Shown piece after piece: positions 38,381 through 58,423 of a stretch of DNA of 64,000 bases. This DNA is from Octopus bimaculoides (taxonomy: Eukaryota): contig NC_068998.1 of NCBI RefSeq assembly GCF_001194135.2, positions 50,972,717 to 51,036,716 on the forward strand, written 5' to 3'. The translations under genes were made by a program, and so were the position numbers. How positions within the stretch are numbered: position 1 is the first letter of the stretch; every line of letters begins with the position of its first letter. Under the pieces are notes generated by a model that ran no database searches, was not told the origin of the DNA, and saw only the letters and a list, made by a program, of their open reading frames with translations.

Positions 38381-38417
38381 ATGAAATATTTTCTATGCAT
38401 TTGTCTTCTCATTGTCG
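38381..38417 (+). CDS. Gene A coding exon 1 (signal peptide N/H region, MKYFLCICLLIV)
   Basis: ATG at 38381; phase-1 donor G|GTAAGT at 38418, conserved in all three copies. Confidence 0.8.
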
Positions 38418-38846
38418 GTAAGTAGCTAAAAGACAAATGTTTTTCTTCTTCATAAACCTTCACATTAATCTCTGCATATCAATTAATCTAACACCCCCAC
38501 CATATGTATGTATATATATATATATATNNNNNNNNNNNNNNNNNNNNNNNNNNNNNNNNNNNNNNNNNNNNNNNNNNNNNNNNNNNNNNNNNNNNNNNNN
38601 NNNNNNNNNNNNNNNNNNNNNNNNNNNNNNNNNNNNNNNNNNNNNNNNNNNNNNNNNNNNNNNNNNNNNNNNNNNNNNNNNNNNNNNNNNNNNNNNNNNN
38701 NNNNNNNNNNNNNNNNNNNNNNNNNNNNNNNNNNNNNNNNNNNNNNNNNNNNNNNNNNNNNNNNNNNNNNNNNNNNNNNNNNNNNNNNNNNNNNNNNNNN
38801 NNNNNNNNNNNNNNNNNNNNNNNNNNNNNNNNNNNNNNNNNNNNNN

Positions 38847-38934
<88 letters not shown>

Positions 38935-41900
38935 TCTGTTATTGGTGACAAAGGCCGAACAGAAAATAAATAGGGACAATAAATTATAAGGGACAAGTGG
39001 GGCGCTGAATAATGCCGTGTATACAATAAGTAACACAAGACAATAAGTAACAAAACAAATAAAGACAATTTAACAATAAAAATTCCCCCAAAGGTGGCAG
39101 TTCCTCACAGGGACAACTGCAGAATCCCACAGGAGCTGGTTATTCCGACTGTCAGGTGCACCTCAGAAATAATAATTATAATCGAGTGAACAGCATTGAG
39201 AGACCTGTAGGAAAATGAGCAACCAAGAAAAAAAAAAGTAATGTTTTGTTGTTCTCGTTAGTCCCTGCAACGACGATATTCGTCTCGTTCCGATACATAT
39301 ATTGTATTTTCTAAAAGTGAGTATACATTTAGTATGATACACAGATGTCGATTCCCAAAATAAATTTACTGATTTTTCCTTCGTTATTATTATTCTCAGT
39401 CATATTTGTTTTTTTAAATAAACCCCTTTTACTCTTCTCTTTCTTGTTTCAGTCGTTGGGTTACAGACATGTTGGAGCTTCAACTCACTGAGTAAGCAGA
39501 TAATAACAATCCGCACTCTTTACTCTAAAGTGTGGTATCTTTTTATCGGATTCTATATATCGAACTGTACAGTCACGTAACATAAACAAAAGCCATATGT
39601 TTTTTAAAGAGTAACCTAGACACCATTACCACAGAACACAGCAGTAAAGCCACATATATTACACACACACACACACACACATACACACACACACATATAC
39701 ACATGATATACACACATACATTTAGATCGNNNNNNNNNNNNNNNNNNNNNNNNNNNNNNNNNNNNNNNNNNNNNNNNNNNNNNNNNNNNNNNNNNNNNNN
39801 NNNNNNNNNNNNNNNNNNNNNNNNNNNNNNNNNNNNNNNNNNNNNNNNNNNNNNNNNNNNNNNNNTATATATGCATTTGCCTATCTGAATGTTTAAGACA
39901 AATATCTGAAATTTTTATCTCAGTCCAAATTTTATTAATCTTTAACTCATATACGAGCGGAAAAAACAAACAGTTGTACTATATACTGGAGTTTTATCGC
40001 CATTAAAATTCTCGTATATACACACACATATACATGCACACACATGTCTGTAATATACGGTATGGGATGTGTGATATGTTTTAGAGTATTTATAGGATTT
40101 TGTACAAGTTTCATGTGAGTGAAATGTATTTAATATATATTCTATGTTTTTTTATTGCCATATTCCATCCGATGAAGAACTCAATCGTAAACGCCGAGGT
40201 TAGTGATGTTTTCTACTTACACTACACACCATATAGTTTACGGTATACTTTGCATATTTAGATACCGATCGTAAATAGATAGAATTCTCTCGGTATGCAA
40301 CTGTAGTGTAGAATGAAGCACAATACATATTGCAGTATTAATAAGAGAAAAGTTATTTCTATATAGCTGGAATACAAGTACTAATTGAAGATATAATAGG
40401 ATGAAAGTTGTTTATAATAGAAAAATAATCTACAGTATTAATATGGACCCGTTTGTATATTGTTTATATTGCTTTTAATTGTGTTTATTTTTTAAATGCA
40501 ATATGTATGTACATTCAGGTAGAACAATGTCTAGAAATGTGATGTATTCGTATCGAGAGCGAAAATCGATTCCGTATTAAAATTAGTTCACAAGTGGGCT
40601 GAAATCATTGTAAATATTTTAGAAAGTATGTTCGTTATTGCTAGAATAAATAGATGTAGTGTATCTAGATTAACGCCAATCTGCGTTAATCTAGGTATTA
40701 TCAAGGTGTGTTAGGGTTTAATTTAGTCCCACAGCTAGCTATATCTGAGACTGTGGGAGACGCAAATGTGATGTCTTTTAAGCGTGATCTTCCTTGGATA
40801 TTTCATAAAGAAGCTACGTTTTATATATGAATAGTTTTAAAATATTGAGTATGAGATATATGGTTGTTATAATTCATTTCTTATTGAAATCTACTTAGTT
40901 GTAGCAAAGAGGAAAAGTTTTTCCAGTAGACGTTTTACGTGTTTTAAGATAAATAATATATCAACAGATGTTAATACATATAATTAGTCAATAAATTAGA
41001 ATATTTTCGGATGTCAATTATAGTCATAATTGTAGTGAGTCACCATTTTATGACTTCTCCAGAGCCAATGTAAAATGGTTGCTAACATAATATAAGATCT
41101 AGTTTGTAATATCAATATCTCTCTTAAAATATAGAAGCATCTAATTTGGTATTATTAACACGGCAATTGTTGTTTCTATTTTAGACGAGAGGCCAGTCGT
41201 TTTGAGGGGAGGGGGATAGTCAATACTACCGATCCTAGTACATGATGACAACTTTATTTTAACGACTACAGACAAAAGGCAAAGTTGACATCGGCTGAAT
41301 GGTAATTTAGAACATAAAGAGAGAGAACAAACAGAATTTACTTGTTCCATCGCTCTAACAATTCTATCAACCCTCCGCCCCCACCAATAAGACACGTATT
41401 CTGTTGTTTTTAAATCACATCAAGGAACATCAAATAAGTATTAAATTTTAAAATATTGGATTGGTGCATAATTATTGCGGTTTTTTTTTTTTTTAACAAA
41501 TTTTATTCAACAAAAACAATAACAATGTTTAACAAAAAAACATCTTTAAATGACGGTCTGACCTTCTGCCAAGCAAATGGGAAGCAGTAATTGAAGTAGA
41601 TGGTGAATATGCTCCGGAATAATCATTTAAAGATGTTTTTGTTACATGTCGGTATTGTTTTTGTTGAATAAAAAGCCGCAATAATTATGCACCAACCCAA
41701 TAATAATGACATTTGGTTTAAGAAAAATTATCGAAATATAAATAATCATATCTGGGTCAATATATTAAATAATTCATGTATATTTTCGTATTCATATAAT
41801 ATTAAAAAAACAAGGAAATTGTCAGCGGTTTAATAATTAGAAACTGTTAAAGAAAACTAACAAAGCAATCTTCACTCACAACAATTTCTGCTCCACAAAC

Positions 41901-56338: not shown

Positions 56339-56385
<47 letters not shown>

Positions 56386-56386
56386 G

Positions 56387-56430
<44 letters not shown>

Positions 56431-58423
56431 AGTGTGCATTAGTTTCTGCGCGTGTTTTTTTGTGTGCATGGTTACATGAATAAACACACGTATTCCAAAT
56501 CATTCAACCTTTATATTTAACGAAGTTTTTGCAGAATGAATTCTTGCTGGGCTGTTTAGGTCACTGCTTTAATTTAATACTGTTTCAATCTCCTTCACCG
56601 AGTTTTTACCGTTCGGCTGTTACCCACCGATATCAATGAAATAATTATTCACGTTTGCTTATATATCGCGAAAAGAAATTCGTTCAAGAAGGTTGCACGT
56701 TCATGACAGGCCCAGTTAAGGGCGAAATATATCTAATATTGCCATGACTTACTGCTGTGATGACGCTCTTTTATCTGAGATATAAATTGTCTTTTAAATA
56801 CAACATTATTATGAAGAATGTTTTACTGATCCAATTGTACAGATTCATGTCTTCAAACGATGTGTATGAATTGTATAAATTTTGTATGATACACATATCT
56901 CGAGTTTCAAATTAAATTTTCATTATTTTAAACCGTTACTATATTTCTCAATCATTTTCATCATTCCGTGTTTATATTCTTCTAGTTATTTCAGTGATTG
57001 TTCTGCAGAAATGCTGGGGACACAGACCAGTTTGTAAGTAGATCATAACTACGTTCATCTGGATTATTCCAAGCATTACCAATGTGTGTTGGGGCTGAAT
57101 TAGTTTCACAGCTACATCTGAGAGCTTGAAAGAGACGTAAATGTGATGGCGTTTAAGTATGTTCTTATTCGAATATTCTGTGACGTGCGATGCACATCAT
57201 ACACTAATAGTTTTACAATATCGAGTCTGTGTTATTTATCATAACTCATTTTGGAATTTATAGTTGTAACAAACGGGGAGATACTTTCCACCAGACGTTT
57301 ACGTGTTTTAAGATAAACAATATATCAACAGACGTTTGTAAATTGTTAATACATATCAATAGTGAATAAATTAGAAGATTTTCAGTTGTGTATTACAGTC
57401 ATAATTGTAATGAGGCACCATTTTATGATTTCTGCGACATGAACGTAAAATGATTGTTAACATAAGAGTAATTTAGTAATATCAAAATATCCCTCTATTT
57501 GTAGACGCACCTAATTTGATAATATTAAAACACGGCACGATCATCTCATTTGTAAGACACGATTCTAATTTAGGTCGAAGAATATTAGTTTTGATGGGAA
57601 GGGGGTACACGGTACTATTCACCCCAATACCTGAGGAATATTTTAATTTCGAGACTTCGGATGGATGGAAAGCAAATGCATCATTACCAGAATGTGAACT
57701 TGGAACGTAAAGAGCGAGAAGAACTATCACAAGGTATTTTTTTCTGTTGCTATCACAATTCTGTTAATTCGACAGCACGAAATTGATAATGACACTGACA
57801 ATTTCCAGCTGATATCGCGGATTCAGACTGGAATTAGTGTAATTTATACTATATTTCTTAATATTTATTCTGTCTGGAAAGAATATTAAATAATACATTT
57901 TAATATGCAGATCGTCCTGATGTGGGCCATTGCTTTGATGAAGCGTATTGCCCAGGAGCCGAGAAAAAGTATCATTTTGATTATTACAGGGAAATTTTCT
58001 GCTCGTACGTATCCTTTTATTCTAACTATTAGTATTATTTCTCATTTAATATTAATTTAATATTTTCTAAATAAGCAAGTGCGCAATAAACTCTTTAAAA
58101 CTAATATTTCTTTATTGAGCACGCTGCTATAAGTTGTTGGTCAGATTGTAAGTGAATTTAAACATTAAACACACGATCAAATATCATAAAGCAAATTATG
58201 CCACGAAAAGATTTGCCCACAAACATCAAACATATAACGCCATACATTTTATGAACTAATTATATTGACCGAATTCTGTTTGTCTTGCAGACATATACTA
58301 AAGTATAAAGATTGTGCTAAGAAGAACAAAGATCAGCTGTGTATTGAGGTGCTGGATTCCTATTTCAAGTCGGTTTACTTCTGTCCTTGTATGAGATTTT
58401 TGTTTCTTTGCAACATACAATGA
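54903..58423 (+). CDS. Gene C: secreted cysteine-rich small protein, 99 aa, join(54903..54936,56995..57033,57911..58004,58291..58423)
   Basis: Spliced open frame: MKYSLYFLLIIVIVLQKCWG-HRPVYRPDVGHCFDEAYCPGAEKKYHFDYYREIFCSHILKYKDCAKKNKDQLCIEVLDSYFKSVYFCPCMRFLFLCNIQ*. Best-formed signal peptide of the three, 8 mature Cys, TATA at 54834, ATTAAA at 58515. No gaps in introns 2-3, so this copy defines the exon structure. Confidence 0.85.
55295..55530 (+). mobile_element. PLE GIY-YIG endonuclease relic, C-terminal half, in gene C intron 1
   Basis: TKLASHV*xLK...IKWRIIEKSMPYVNGSK*CNFCVAE...LLNSRYEISSKCK matches LSKHIWxLK...IKWxI...CNLCLxE...LLNKRxELxSKCRH. Confidence 0.8.
56995..57033 (+). CDS. Gene C exon 2 (39 nt, VIVLQKCWGHRPV)
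   Basis: Acceptor TAGTTATTTCAG, donor T|GTAAGT. Confidence 0.8.
57911..58004 (+). CDS. Gene C exon 3 (94 nt)
   Basis: Acceptor AATATGCAG, donor TC|GTACGT. Confidence 0.85.
58291..58423 (+). CDS. Gene C exon 4 (to TGA)
   Basis: Acceptor TTTGTCTTGCAG; 5 Cys including CPC. Confidence 0.8.

Follow-up and report, generated by a model that had tools for sequence, protein, structure and literature searches.

We analyzed a 64,000-nucleotide (nt) window of the Octopus bimaculoides genome (contig NC_068998.1, positions 50,972,717 to 51,036,716 of the forward strand), in which three small cysteine-rich genes, designated here A, B and C, lie in tandem. The window corresponds to chromosome CM046618.1 of assembly GCA_001194135.2 (100% identity from ~50,972,717); it is AT-rich and gap-rich, with 19 runs of N. 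Comparison of the window with itself revealed three tandem units of ~8 kilobases (kb) on one strand. Our analysis identified these genes, together with a fourth copy in the window (D), as real members of a larger Octopus family, whose products are predicted to be secreted, disulfide-rich, helical miniproteins.

Rebuilding the genes from the sequence gave A, B and C each its own four-exon model, in which all introns were GT-AG with phases 1, 1 and 2, and all three spliced models were open. Exon 1 ended in G|GTAAGT in each gene, exon 2 had 39 nt, and exon 3 had 103, 94 and 94 nt in A, B and C, respectively. The spacing C-x5-C-x16/19-C-x8-C-x8-C-x13-C occurred in all three proteins, and an additional -x-C-x6-C only in B and C. 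These models confirm the original prediction, made from the sequence alone, of three same-strand paralogues with this exon layout, these intron phases and this cysteine frame. The features of the three units are as follows:

38288-38319, plus strand: core promoter of A, AAACAGCTGTTACA (E-box) followed by TATAAAA, ending ~62 nt 5' of the MKY start codon
38381-38417, plus strand: A exon 1 (signal exon), MKYFLCICLLIV plus G, donor G|GTAAGT, phase 1
39453-39491, plus strand: A exon 2, 39 nt, phase 1 to 1, present in XP_052830460/61
40178-40198, plus strand: A cassette micro-exon, 21 nt, adding LNRKRR, only in RefSeq isoform X1
42073-42175, plus strand: exon 3 of A (103 nt), encoding Cys1-Cys3 and thus the first domain half; it ends in TGT GG|GT, phase 2
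42863-42960, plus strand: exon 4 of A, encoding Cys4-Cys6 and thus the second domain half; RefSeq splices from A|GTAAGA at 42960, and the earlier model ran to a stop at 42998
43426-43454, plus strand: coding part of A exon 5, ending in MSKEKPKSR and a stop
47168-47199, plus strand: core promoter of B, E-box plus TATAAAA
47263-47296, plus strand: B exon 1 (signal exon), donor G|GTAAGT
48070-48141, plus strand: B exon 2 in its RefSeq form of 72 nt; the earlier 39-nt form is 48103-48141
49706-49756, plus strand: B cassette exon, 51 nt, phase 1, in both RefSeq isoforms
50360-50453, plus strand: B exon 3, 94 nt, Cys1-Cys3, ending TGC TT|GT, phase 2
50810-50938, plus strand: B exon 4, Cys4-Cys6 plus C-x-C-x6-C, RefSeq donor TG|GTAAGA
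53608-53641, plus strand: coding part of B exon 5, CSYSCQFRSCE and a stop, with AATAAA 32 nt on, at 53673
54809-54840, plus strand: core promoter of C, E-box plus TATAAAA
54903-54936, plus strand: C exon 1 (signal exon), 94% identical to B exon 1
56995-57033, plus strand: C exon 2, 39 nt, 46% identical to B versus 85% for the flanking intron
57911-58004, plus strand: C exon 3, 94 nt, Cys1-Cys3
58291-58423, plus strand: C exon 4, stop codon TGA at 58421-58423, the B donor lost (ATGAGA for GGTAAG)
58874-58907, plus strand: intact copy of B exon 5, located 3' of C, with AATAAA at 58939

The family had been described as unrecognized, but two of its genes are already annotated. A search with a profile of the three proteins showed that A is RefSeq LOC128249908 (XP_052830460/61) and B is LOC128249863 (XP_052830364/65), each named "uncharacterized protein", and in both cases the shared exons match exactly. 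Each RefSeq gene has two isoforms, which in the Gnomon pipeline would suggest transcript support. The four-exon models were retained as a conserved core, to which RefSeq adds cassette exons, a fifth exon and a longer exon 2 in B. In both A and B, RefSeq uses a GTAAGA donor inside the earlier last exon (42960 and 50938, respectively) and then continues to exon 5. Thus, the earlier stop codons of both genes (in B, exon 4 had been drawn as 50810-50942, with the stop at 50940-50942) were the result of reading through a donor site. Exon 4 of B is skipped in RefSeq isoform X2, and the long form of its exon 2 yields an uncharged core of 21 residues instead of 10. DNA of A and C homologous to the 51-nt cassette of B has no splice sites, and therefore the four exons represent the conserved core of the family. 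The LNRKRR insert of A, located just N-terminal of the domain, is a polybasic motif of the type recognized by furin-like proprotein convertases; if it is used, alternative splicing of A would toggle a processing site.

The RefSeq coding sequence of A starts at an upstream in-frame ATG (38348), and that of B at an ATG (47203) only 4 nt past the conserved TATA box. Considering this short distance, and that the MKY start is also found in two relatives of the family described below (LOC128249871 and LOC128248155), we infer that MKY is the true start. The RefSeq start codons of A and B are probably upstream of the true transcription start, and the corresponding N-terminal extensions are probably annotation artefacts.

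At the 3' end of C, the mutated exon-4 donor means that the frame terminates at 58423, and the copy of exon 5 further downstream is probably unused as coding sequence. The 3' regions of B (53527-53821) and C (58793-59087) share a block of 295 nt with 99% identity, in which exon 5 and the poly(A) signals are located, whereas the surrounding non-coding DNA is ~86% identical. This block looks like the product of a recent gene conversion.

The prediction of three copies was too low. Using the domain as a tblastn query, we detected the fourth paralogue, D, on the minus strand (60728-63705), where it is arranged tail-to-tail with C and is closest to A. Its parts are:

61904-61997, minus strand: D exon 3, 94 nt, GLFGMYYCASDKYCPEAWKKYPPPNNKKDFC, phase 1 to 2
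60728-60825, minus strand: exon 4 of D (98 nt), RLYEYIACARKKGPWWCLSGFMFALQREEVCE, with the donor G|GTAAGG and, like A, phase 1
63661-63705, minus strand: D exon-2-like segment, 45 nt, VVIGIPPLWYGIWK
62467-62496, minus strand: predicted candidate cassette exon of D, 30 nt, phase 1, DHEEHESGTK, flanked by AG and GTTAGT

Exon 1 of D was not found within the window and probably lies past its end. Two copies in the window can therefore be added to the annotation: C, which is unannotated, and D, which is partial. Additional members were present nearby: LOC128249871 is located on the same chromosome, ~77 kb past the window end, and a second exon-3-like copy, MEYCLNKKHCPDAWKRYP, adjoins it (positions 21935-21988 of the flanking sequence L002 from CM046618.1, likewise ~77 kb past the window end). 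With at least two more copies outside the window, the cluster has at least six members across ~150 kb. In Octopus vulgaris, an orthologue of A was found within a mis-modelled gene whose model spans 140 kb.

A different arrangement was seen in LOC128248155 on chromosome CM046606.1, which encodes uncharacterized proteins of 540-546 amino acids (XP_052824891/92) composed of eight tandem six-cysteine modules; fragments of this gene occur in Octopus sinensis (XP_036359395) and O. vulgaris (CAI9724703). It shares the domain, the signal exon, the phase-2 intron after Cys3 and the E-box/TATA motif with the window genes, but differs from them in having eight domains per chain instead of one, a Cys1-Cys2 spacing of x7 instead of x5, a conserved PD motif before Cys3 and a location on another chromosome. 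When the cluster genes were compared with the repeat modules, hhalign gave a probability of 97% (E = 3e-11). Across the alignment of 17 family sequences, six cysteines are invariant, accompanied by two motifs, CP.A...YP and (F/Y)C.RL..Y..CA. In an exhaustive profile search of 1.84 billion representative proteins, the relatives of the family were Octopus proteins only (E = 1e-4 to 1e-25); one further protein was rejected as a repeat-protein false positive. A word-indexed protein search with the 17-row alignment missed even proteins that were its own rows, so that absence from that search is weak evidence. No relevant description of the loci, their accessions or peptide motifs, or a connection with PF06535 was found in the literature library searched.

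Gene architecture supports the unity of this family. The signal exon of LOC128248155 has 37 nt and ends in G|GTAAGT, and each of its repeats is encoded by two exons with phase-1 flanks, between which a phase-2 intron immediately follows the codon for Cys3, an arrangement equivalent to exons 3 and 4 of the window genes. In LOC128249871, the corresponding exons have 103 and 98 nt, as in A. A signal exon of 34-37 nt ending in G|GTAAGT in phase 1 and a phase-2 intron after Cys3 are thus common to the window genes, LOC128249871 and LOC128248155. The N-terminal uncharged cores have 10-21 residues, and this hydrophobic core and the invariant cysteines suggest that the proteins are secreted and form disulfides. 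These data support the view of a tandem, lineage-restricted family of small cysteine-rich proteins, whose hydrophobic, signal-like segment is split by a phase-1 intron.

The promoters are also related. The 14-mer AAACAGCTGTTACA occurs exactly three times in the 64-kb window, once per gene (A, B and C), ~94 nt 5' of the MKY start; it is followed by TATAAAA in each case, and the upstream DNA is strongly conserved. This motif could be aligned with DNA upstream of LOC128249871 and LOC128248155, such that five genes on two chromosomes have AAACA(G/T)CTGTTACA followed by a TATA-like box. The common promoter suggests one shared expressing cell type, and a motif that is kept across paralogues on two chromosomes is a possible handle on this cell type.

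The original prediction recognized no named family, but one known domain is probably related. Eight of the 17 domain sequences matched Pfam PF06535 (RGM_N, the N-terminal domain of repulsive guidance molecules, RGMs), and no other Pfam family recurred. A two-repeat relative from O. sinensis, with 29.1 bits against a cut-off of 24.2, was the only relative to pass; single repeat modules scored 14-22 bits, some of them across profile positions 4-56 of 70 including Cys1 and Cys2, and LOC128249871 scored 16-17 bits. When a family profile was run against PDB sequences, the RGMB and RGMC N-domains were the top four matches (best E 0.026), aligned over FCkaLraYagC..C. Comparison with the N-domains of human RGMA, RGMB and RGMC by hhalign (the RGMA and RGMB sequences used being identical to their PDB chains) gave a score of 21.3 (E = 1e-3, probability 20%), with an alignment of 32 columns between Cys3 and Cys5. 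In 300 column-shuffled controls, the maximum score was 15.5, so that none attained the observed value, which was about six standard deviations above them. For the cluster genes alone, the score was 17.7, reached by none of 200 shuffles.

The similarity extends to the organization of the domain. In RGMA, RGMB and RGMC/hemojuvelin (PDB 4UHY, 4UI0, 4UI1, 6Z3G-J), as in the Octopus proteins, it is located right after the signal peptide and has the same order of six cysteines, a central C-x8-C-x7/8-C and the motif (F/Y)C-x2-L-x2-Y-x2-C, and the fourth position after Cys5 is hydrophobic. The six cysteines of the Octopus proteins occur in conserved order around an FC-x2-L-x2-Y-x2-C-x7-C core, with Cys3, Cys4 and Cys5 in register. 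The RGM N-terminal domain is a bundle of three helices with three disulfides, which binds BMP2 and GDF5 (PMC7354924). An AlphaFold2 model of the A domain (predicted local distance difference test, pLDDT, 82; predicted template modeling score, pTM, 0.68) also had three helices, in positions that correspond to those of RGM_N. From these comparisons, it is quite probable that the Octopus domain is a remote homologue of RGM_N.

It should be noted, however, that several observations weigh against this assignment. The proteins of A, B, C and D had no match to PF06535 even at E <= 10, and hence did not reach its gathering score of 24.2 bits; the spliced A, B and C proteins matched no known Pfam family. 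The window genes alone gave a marginal hhalign score of 13.8, which was reached by nine of 200 shuffles. A phmmer search of the PDB with a single family sequence did not find RGM. Foldseek with the A-domain model gave no significant match (RGMB was at rank 6, E = 7.4, TM 0.46); the model of full-length B had a low pLDDT of 59, which makes its Foldseek search meaningless. The ligand contacts of RGM are in the alpha2-alpha3 linker (RGD/RGN loop, Leu103) and in alpha3 (His106) (PMC7354924). The GDF5-contacting loop and His106 are not conserved in the Octopus proteins, and among the contact residues only the hydrophobic one (Leu/Phe) four positions after Cys5 is kept. With respect to the family as such, no transcript-derived copy was found among the protein collections searched, and several models have an odd number of cysteines.

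The Octopus proteins are also clearly not complete RGMs. They have 99-157 amino acids, end 0-20 residues past the domain, have no match to RGM_C, and lack this von Willebrand D-like domain as well as the GDPH autocleavage site and the glycosylphosphatidylinositol (GPI) anchor. Their first loop and last helix are shorter than those of RGM_N, and B and C have extra C-terminal cysteines. In addition, RGMs are conserved and have few copies, whereas the Octopus family is tandemly expanded and fast-evolving. Since no window protein reached the Pfam threshold, the domain is referred to here as RGM_N-like and is not assigned to that family.

An alternative is that the genes encode real secreted miniproteins whose likeness to RGM_N is convergent, i.e., that the FC-x2-L-x2-Y-x2-C-x7/8-C helix-loop arose independently in an Octopus-specific domain with an unrelated function. 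This would be consistent with an hhalign match restricted to the 32 columns between Cys3 and Cys5 and with its low probability, with spacings around Cys1-Cys2 and before Cys6 that are unlike those of RGM, with the failure of Foldseek and of single-sequence searches, and with the lack of relatives outside Octopus in the exhaustive profile search. However, convergence would not readily explain why RGM_N is the sole recurrent Pfam family, why some modules align over most of its profile including the first two cysteines, or why one relative exceeds a curated cut-off and the hhalign score is so far above composition-matched shuffles; agreement with RGM_N is also seen in the order of the six cysteines, in the x8 and x7/8 spacings at the center and in the positions at which helices are predicted. 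We therefore regard convergence as unlikely, though far from negligible, and remote homology to RGM_N as the better explanation.

To characterize evolution of the copies, we compared them in pairs. For A-D and A-LOC128249871, the proportions of nonsynonymous (pN) and synonymous (pS) differences were ~0.3 and ~0.7, respectively, and raw values for D-LOC128249871 were similar. Omega was ~0.14-0.18 for the pairs of A, D and LOC128249871, with saturated synonymous divergence (dS). This indicates purifying selection on the branch formed by these three genes.

The pattern was different for B and C. In 1859 nt of aligned non-coding DNA, which contained 20 gap events, they were 85.9% identical, whereas in exons 2-4 they were only 73.7% identical; the corresponding differences of 14.1% and 26.3% are significant (binomial p = 1.2e-7). 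The signal exon was 94% identical (5.9% difference), no indels were found in 300 nt of exons, and eight of eight cysteines were kept. When the 45 differences between B and C were placed randomly in exons 3 and 4, all eight cysteines survived in 0.6% of trials, and both the cysteines and the open frame in 0.1%. This combination of a kept signal, invariant cysteines and a mature region that evolves faster than introns indicates diversifying selection; alternatively, gene conversion may have homogenized everything but the exons. Neither possibility is compatible with simple pseudogene decay. The pattern of a rapidly evolving secreted peptide was found for B versus C only (94%, 74% and 86% identity in exon 1, exons 2-4 and non-coding DNA, respectively), and in this pair the mature region evolves fast, in the manner of venom, defence or reproductive peptides. 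With introns more conserved than exons, the pair appears to be a compact cephalopod case of a helical disulfide scaffold under diversifying selection.

It is also possible that C, and perhaps B, is a decaying duplicate, and that the divergence of the two genes reflects relaxed constraint. We found no protein matching C in the protein collection searched (a word-indexed search with C alone), and the Nei-Gojobori (NG86) omega for B versus C was ~0.85; both results count against our interpretation and in favor of decay, as do the absence from C of the exon-4 donor and of the upstream exon-2 acceptor used by B. However, neutral decay predicts that exons diverge as much as introns, whereas here they are significantly more diverged. 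In addition, all eight cysteines, the open frame and the six core splice sites are intact, with a joint probability for cysteines and frame of ~0.001, and the promoter motif and signal exon are conserved. Decay thus appears quite improbable, and diversifying selection fits these data better. It is highly improbable that a single long multi-domain gene similar to LOC128248155 contains A, B and C as its modules, with the signal exons as skipped relics. That gene has eight tandem two-exon modules, and the A and D modules are phase-symmetric (1 to 1) and hence joinable by splicing. However, each unit carries a conserved promoter motif and a signal exon of its own as well as separate start and stop codons, and in B the last exon is followed by a poly(A) signal. 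In addition, RefSeq keeps A and B separate with separate terminal exons, and the phase at the end of B exon 4 is 2 instead of 1.

Similar modes of evolution are known in other systems. Conopeptide, venom and defence gene superfamilies combine a conserved signal exon and introns with a hypervariable mature region, fixed cysteines and tandem duplication; the window genes are like them in evolutionary mode only, with no relationship in sequence or fold. Attractin, a water-borne pheromone of the mollusc Aplysia, is a secreted helical protein of ~60 residues with six cysteines. Its cysteine spacing is unlike that of the Octopus family and no sequence similarity was detected, and the analogy is functional only.

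Taken together, we favor, with moderate confidence, a real Octopus gene family encoding secreted, RGM_N-like binding miniproteins with three helices and three disulfides. The genes have in common a conserved promoter with E-box and TATA box, a signal exon and a hypervariable linker exon, both short, and a two-exon module for one domain of ~60 residues with six invariant cysteines. The product would be secreted with removal of the signal peptide, and the domain is predicted to fold as a small bundle of three helices that is held by three disulfides; B and C have additional cysteines. This bundle, probably a stand-alone form of the RGM N-terminal domain that has diverged greatly, may act extracellularly by binding another protein. 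Since BMP/GDF ligands are bound by the vertebrate RGM N-domain, the first candidate to consider as a target is a ligand of the TGF-beta family. The B/C branch diversifies so fast that it may serve a different target, e.g., in prey, microbes or mates.

A more specific scenario is that an RGM N-domain was freed from its membrane-anchored parent and expanded as stand-alone and concatenated secreted proteins, with the constrained branch functioning as a soluble modulator or trap of TGF-beta-family ligands and the other branch positively selected against an external target, which may belong to prey, microbes or mates. In this detailed form, the scenario is speculative and rather unlikely. If it is true, the single shared E-box/TATA promoter would imply one dedicated secretory cell type. 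If the link to RGM holds, these would be, as far as we could find, the first stand-alone and multi-repeat RGM_N-type proteins, and binding of BMP/GDF-type ligands would be a concrete hypothesis for an orphan Octopus family.

Six of the assembly gaps lie in the region of the cluster:

38528-38846: gap in A intron 1
39730-39865: gap in A intron 2
48504-49420: gap in B intron 2
52102-52597: gap 3' of the four-exon B model, within the RefSeq intron between B exons 4 and 5
54053-54062: intergenic gap
56329-56338: gap in C intron 1

The nearest distance from an exon to any of them is 110 nt and no exon abuts a gap, and the reading frames are therefore independent of the gaps; a cassette exon may be hidden inside one of the six. 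Identical runs of N are present in assembly GCA_001194135.2. Nearly all of the 19 runs in the window are flanked by (TA)n, (CA)n or homopolymer tracts, which suggests that the gaps are unresolved microsatellites and not joins of unrelated scaffolds.

An inverted repeat of 98 nt, 98% complementary (52004-52101 and 52705-52802), straddles the gap at 52102-52597 in the last RefSeq intron of B. It could be either a genuine hairpin-forming repeat or an assembly artefact at the gap. A weak match, PSIWKKYP (4311-4337), has no cysteines, lies inside microsatellite DNA and was discarded as a chance match. Finally, an interspersed repeat of ~100-300 nt, which is probably a short interspersed nuclear element (SINE)-like element, occurs in both orientations with 70-92% identity across the window, including the region between A and B. 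Examples are:

5419-5890: interspersed repeat
12271-12612: interspersed repeat
13238-13323: interspersed repeat
27050-27257: interspersed repeat
31151-31362: interspersed repeat
33770-33877: interspersed repeat
43816-44055: interspersed repeat
46297-46483: interspersed repeat

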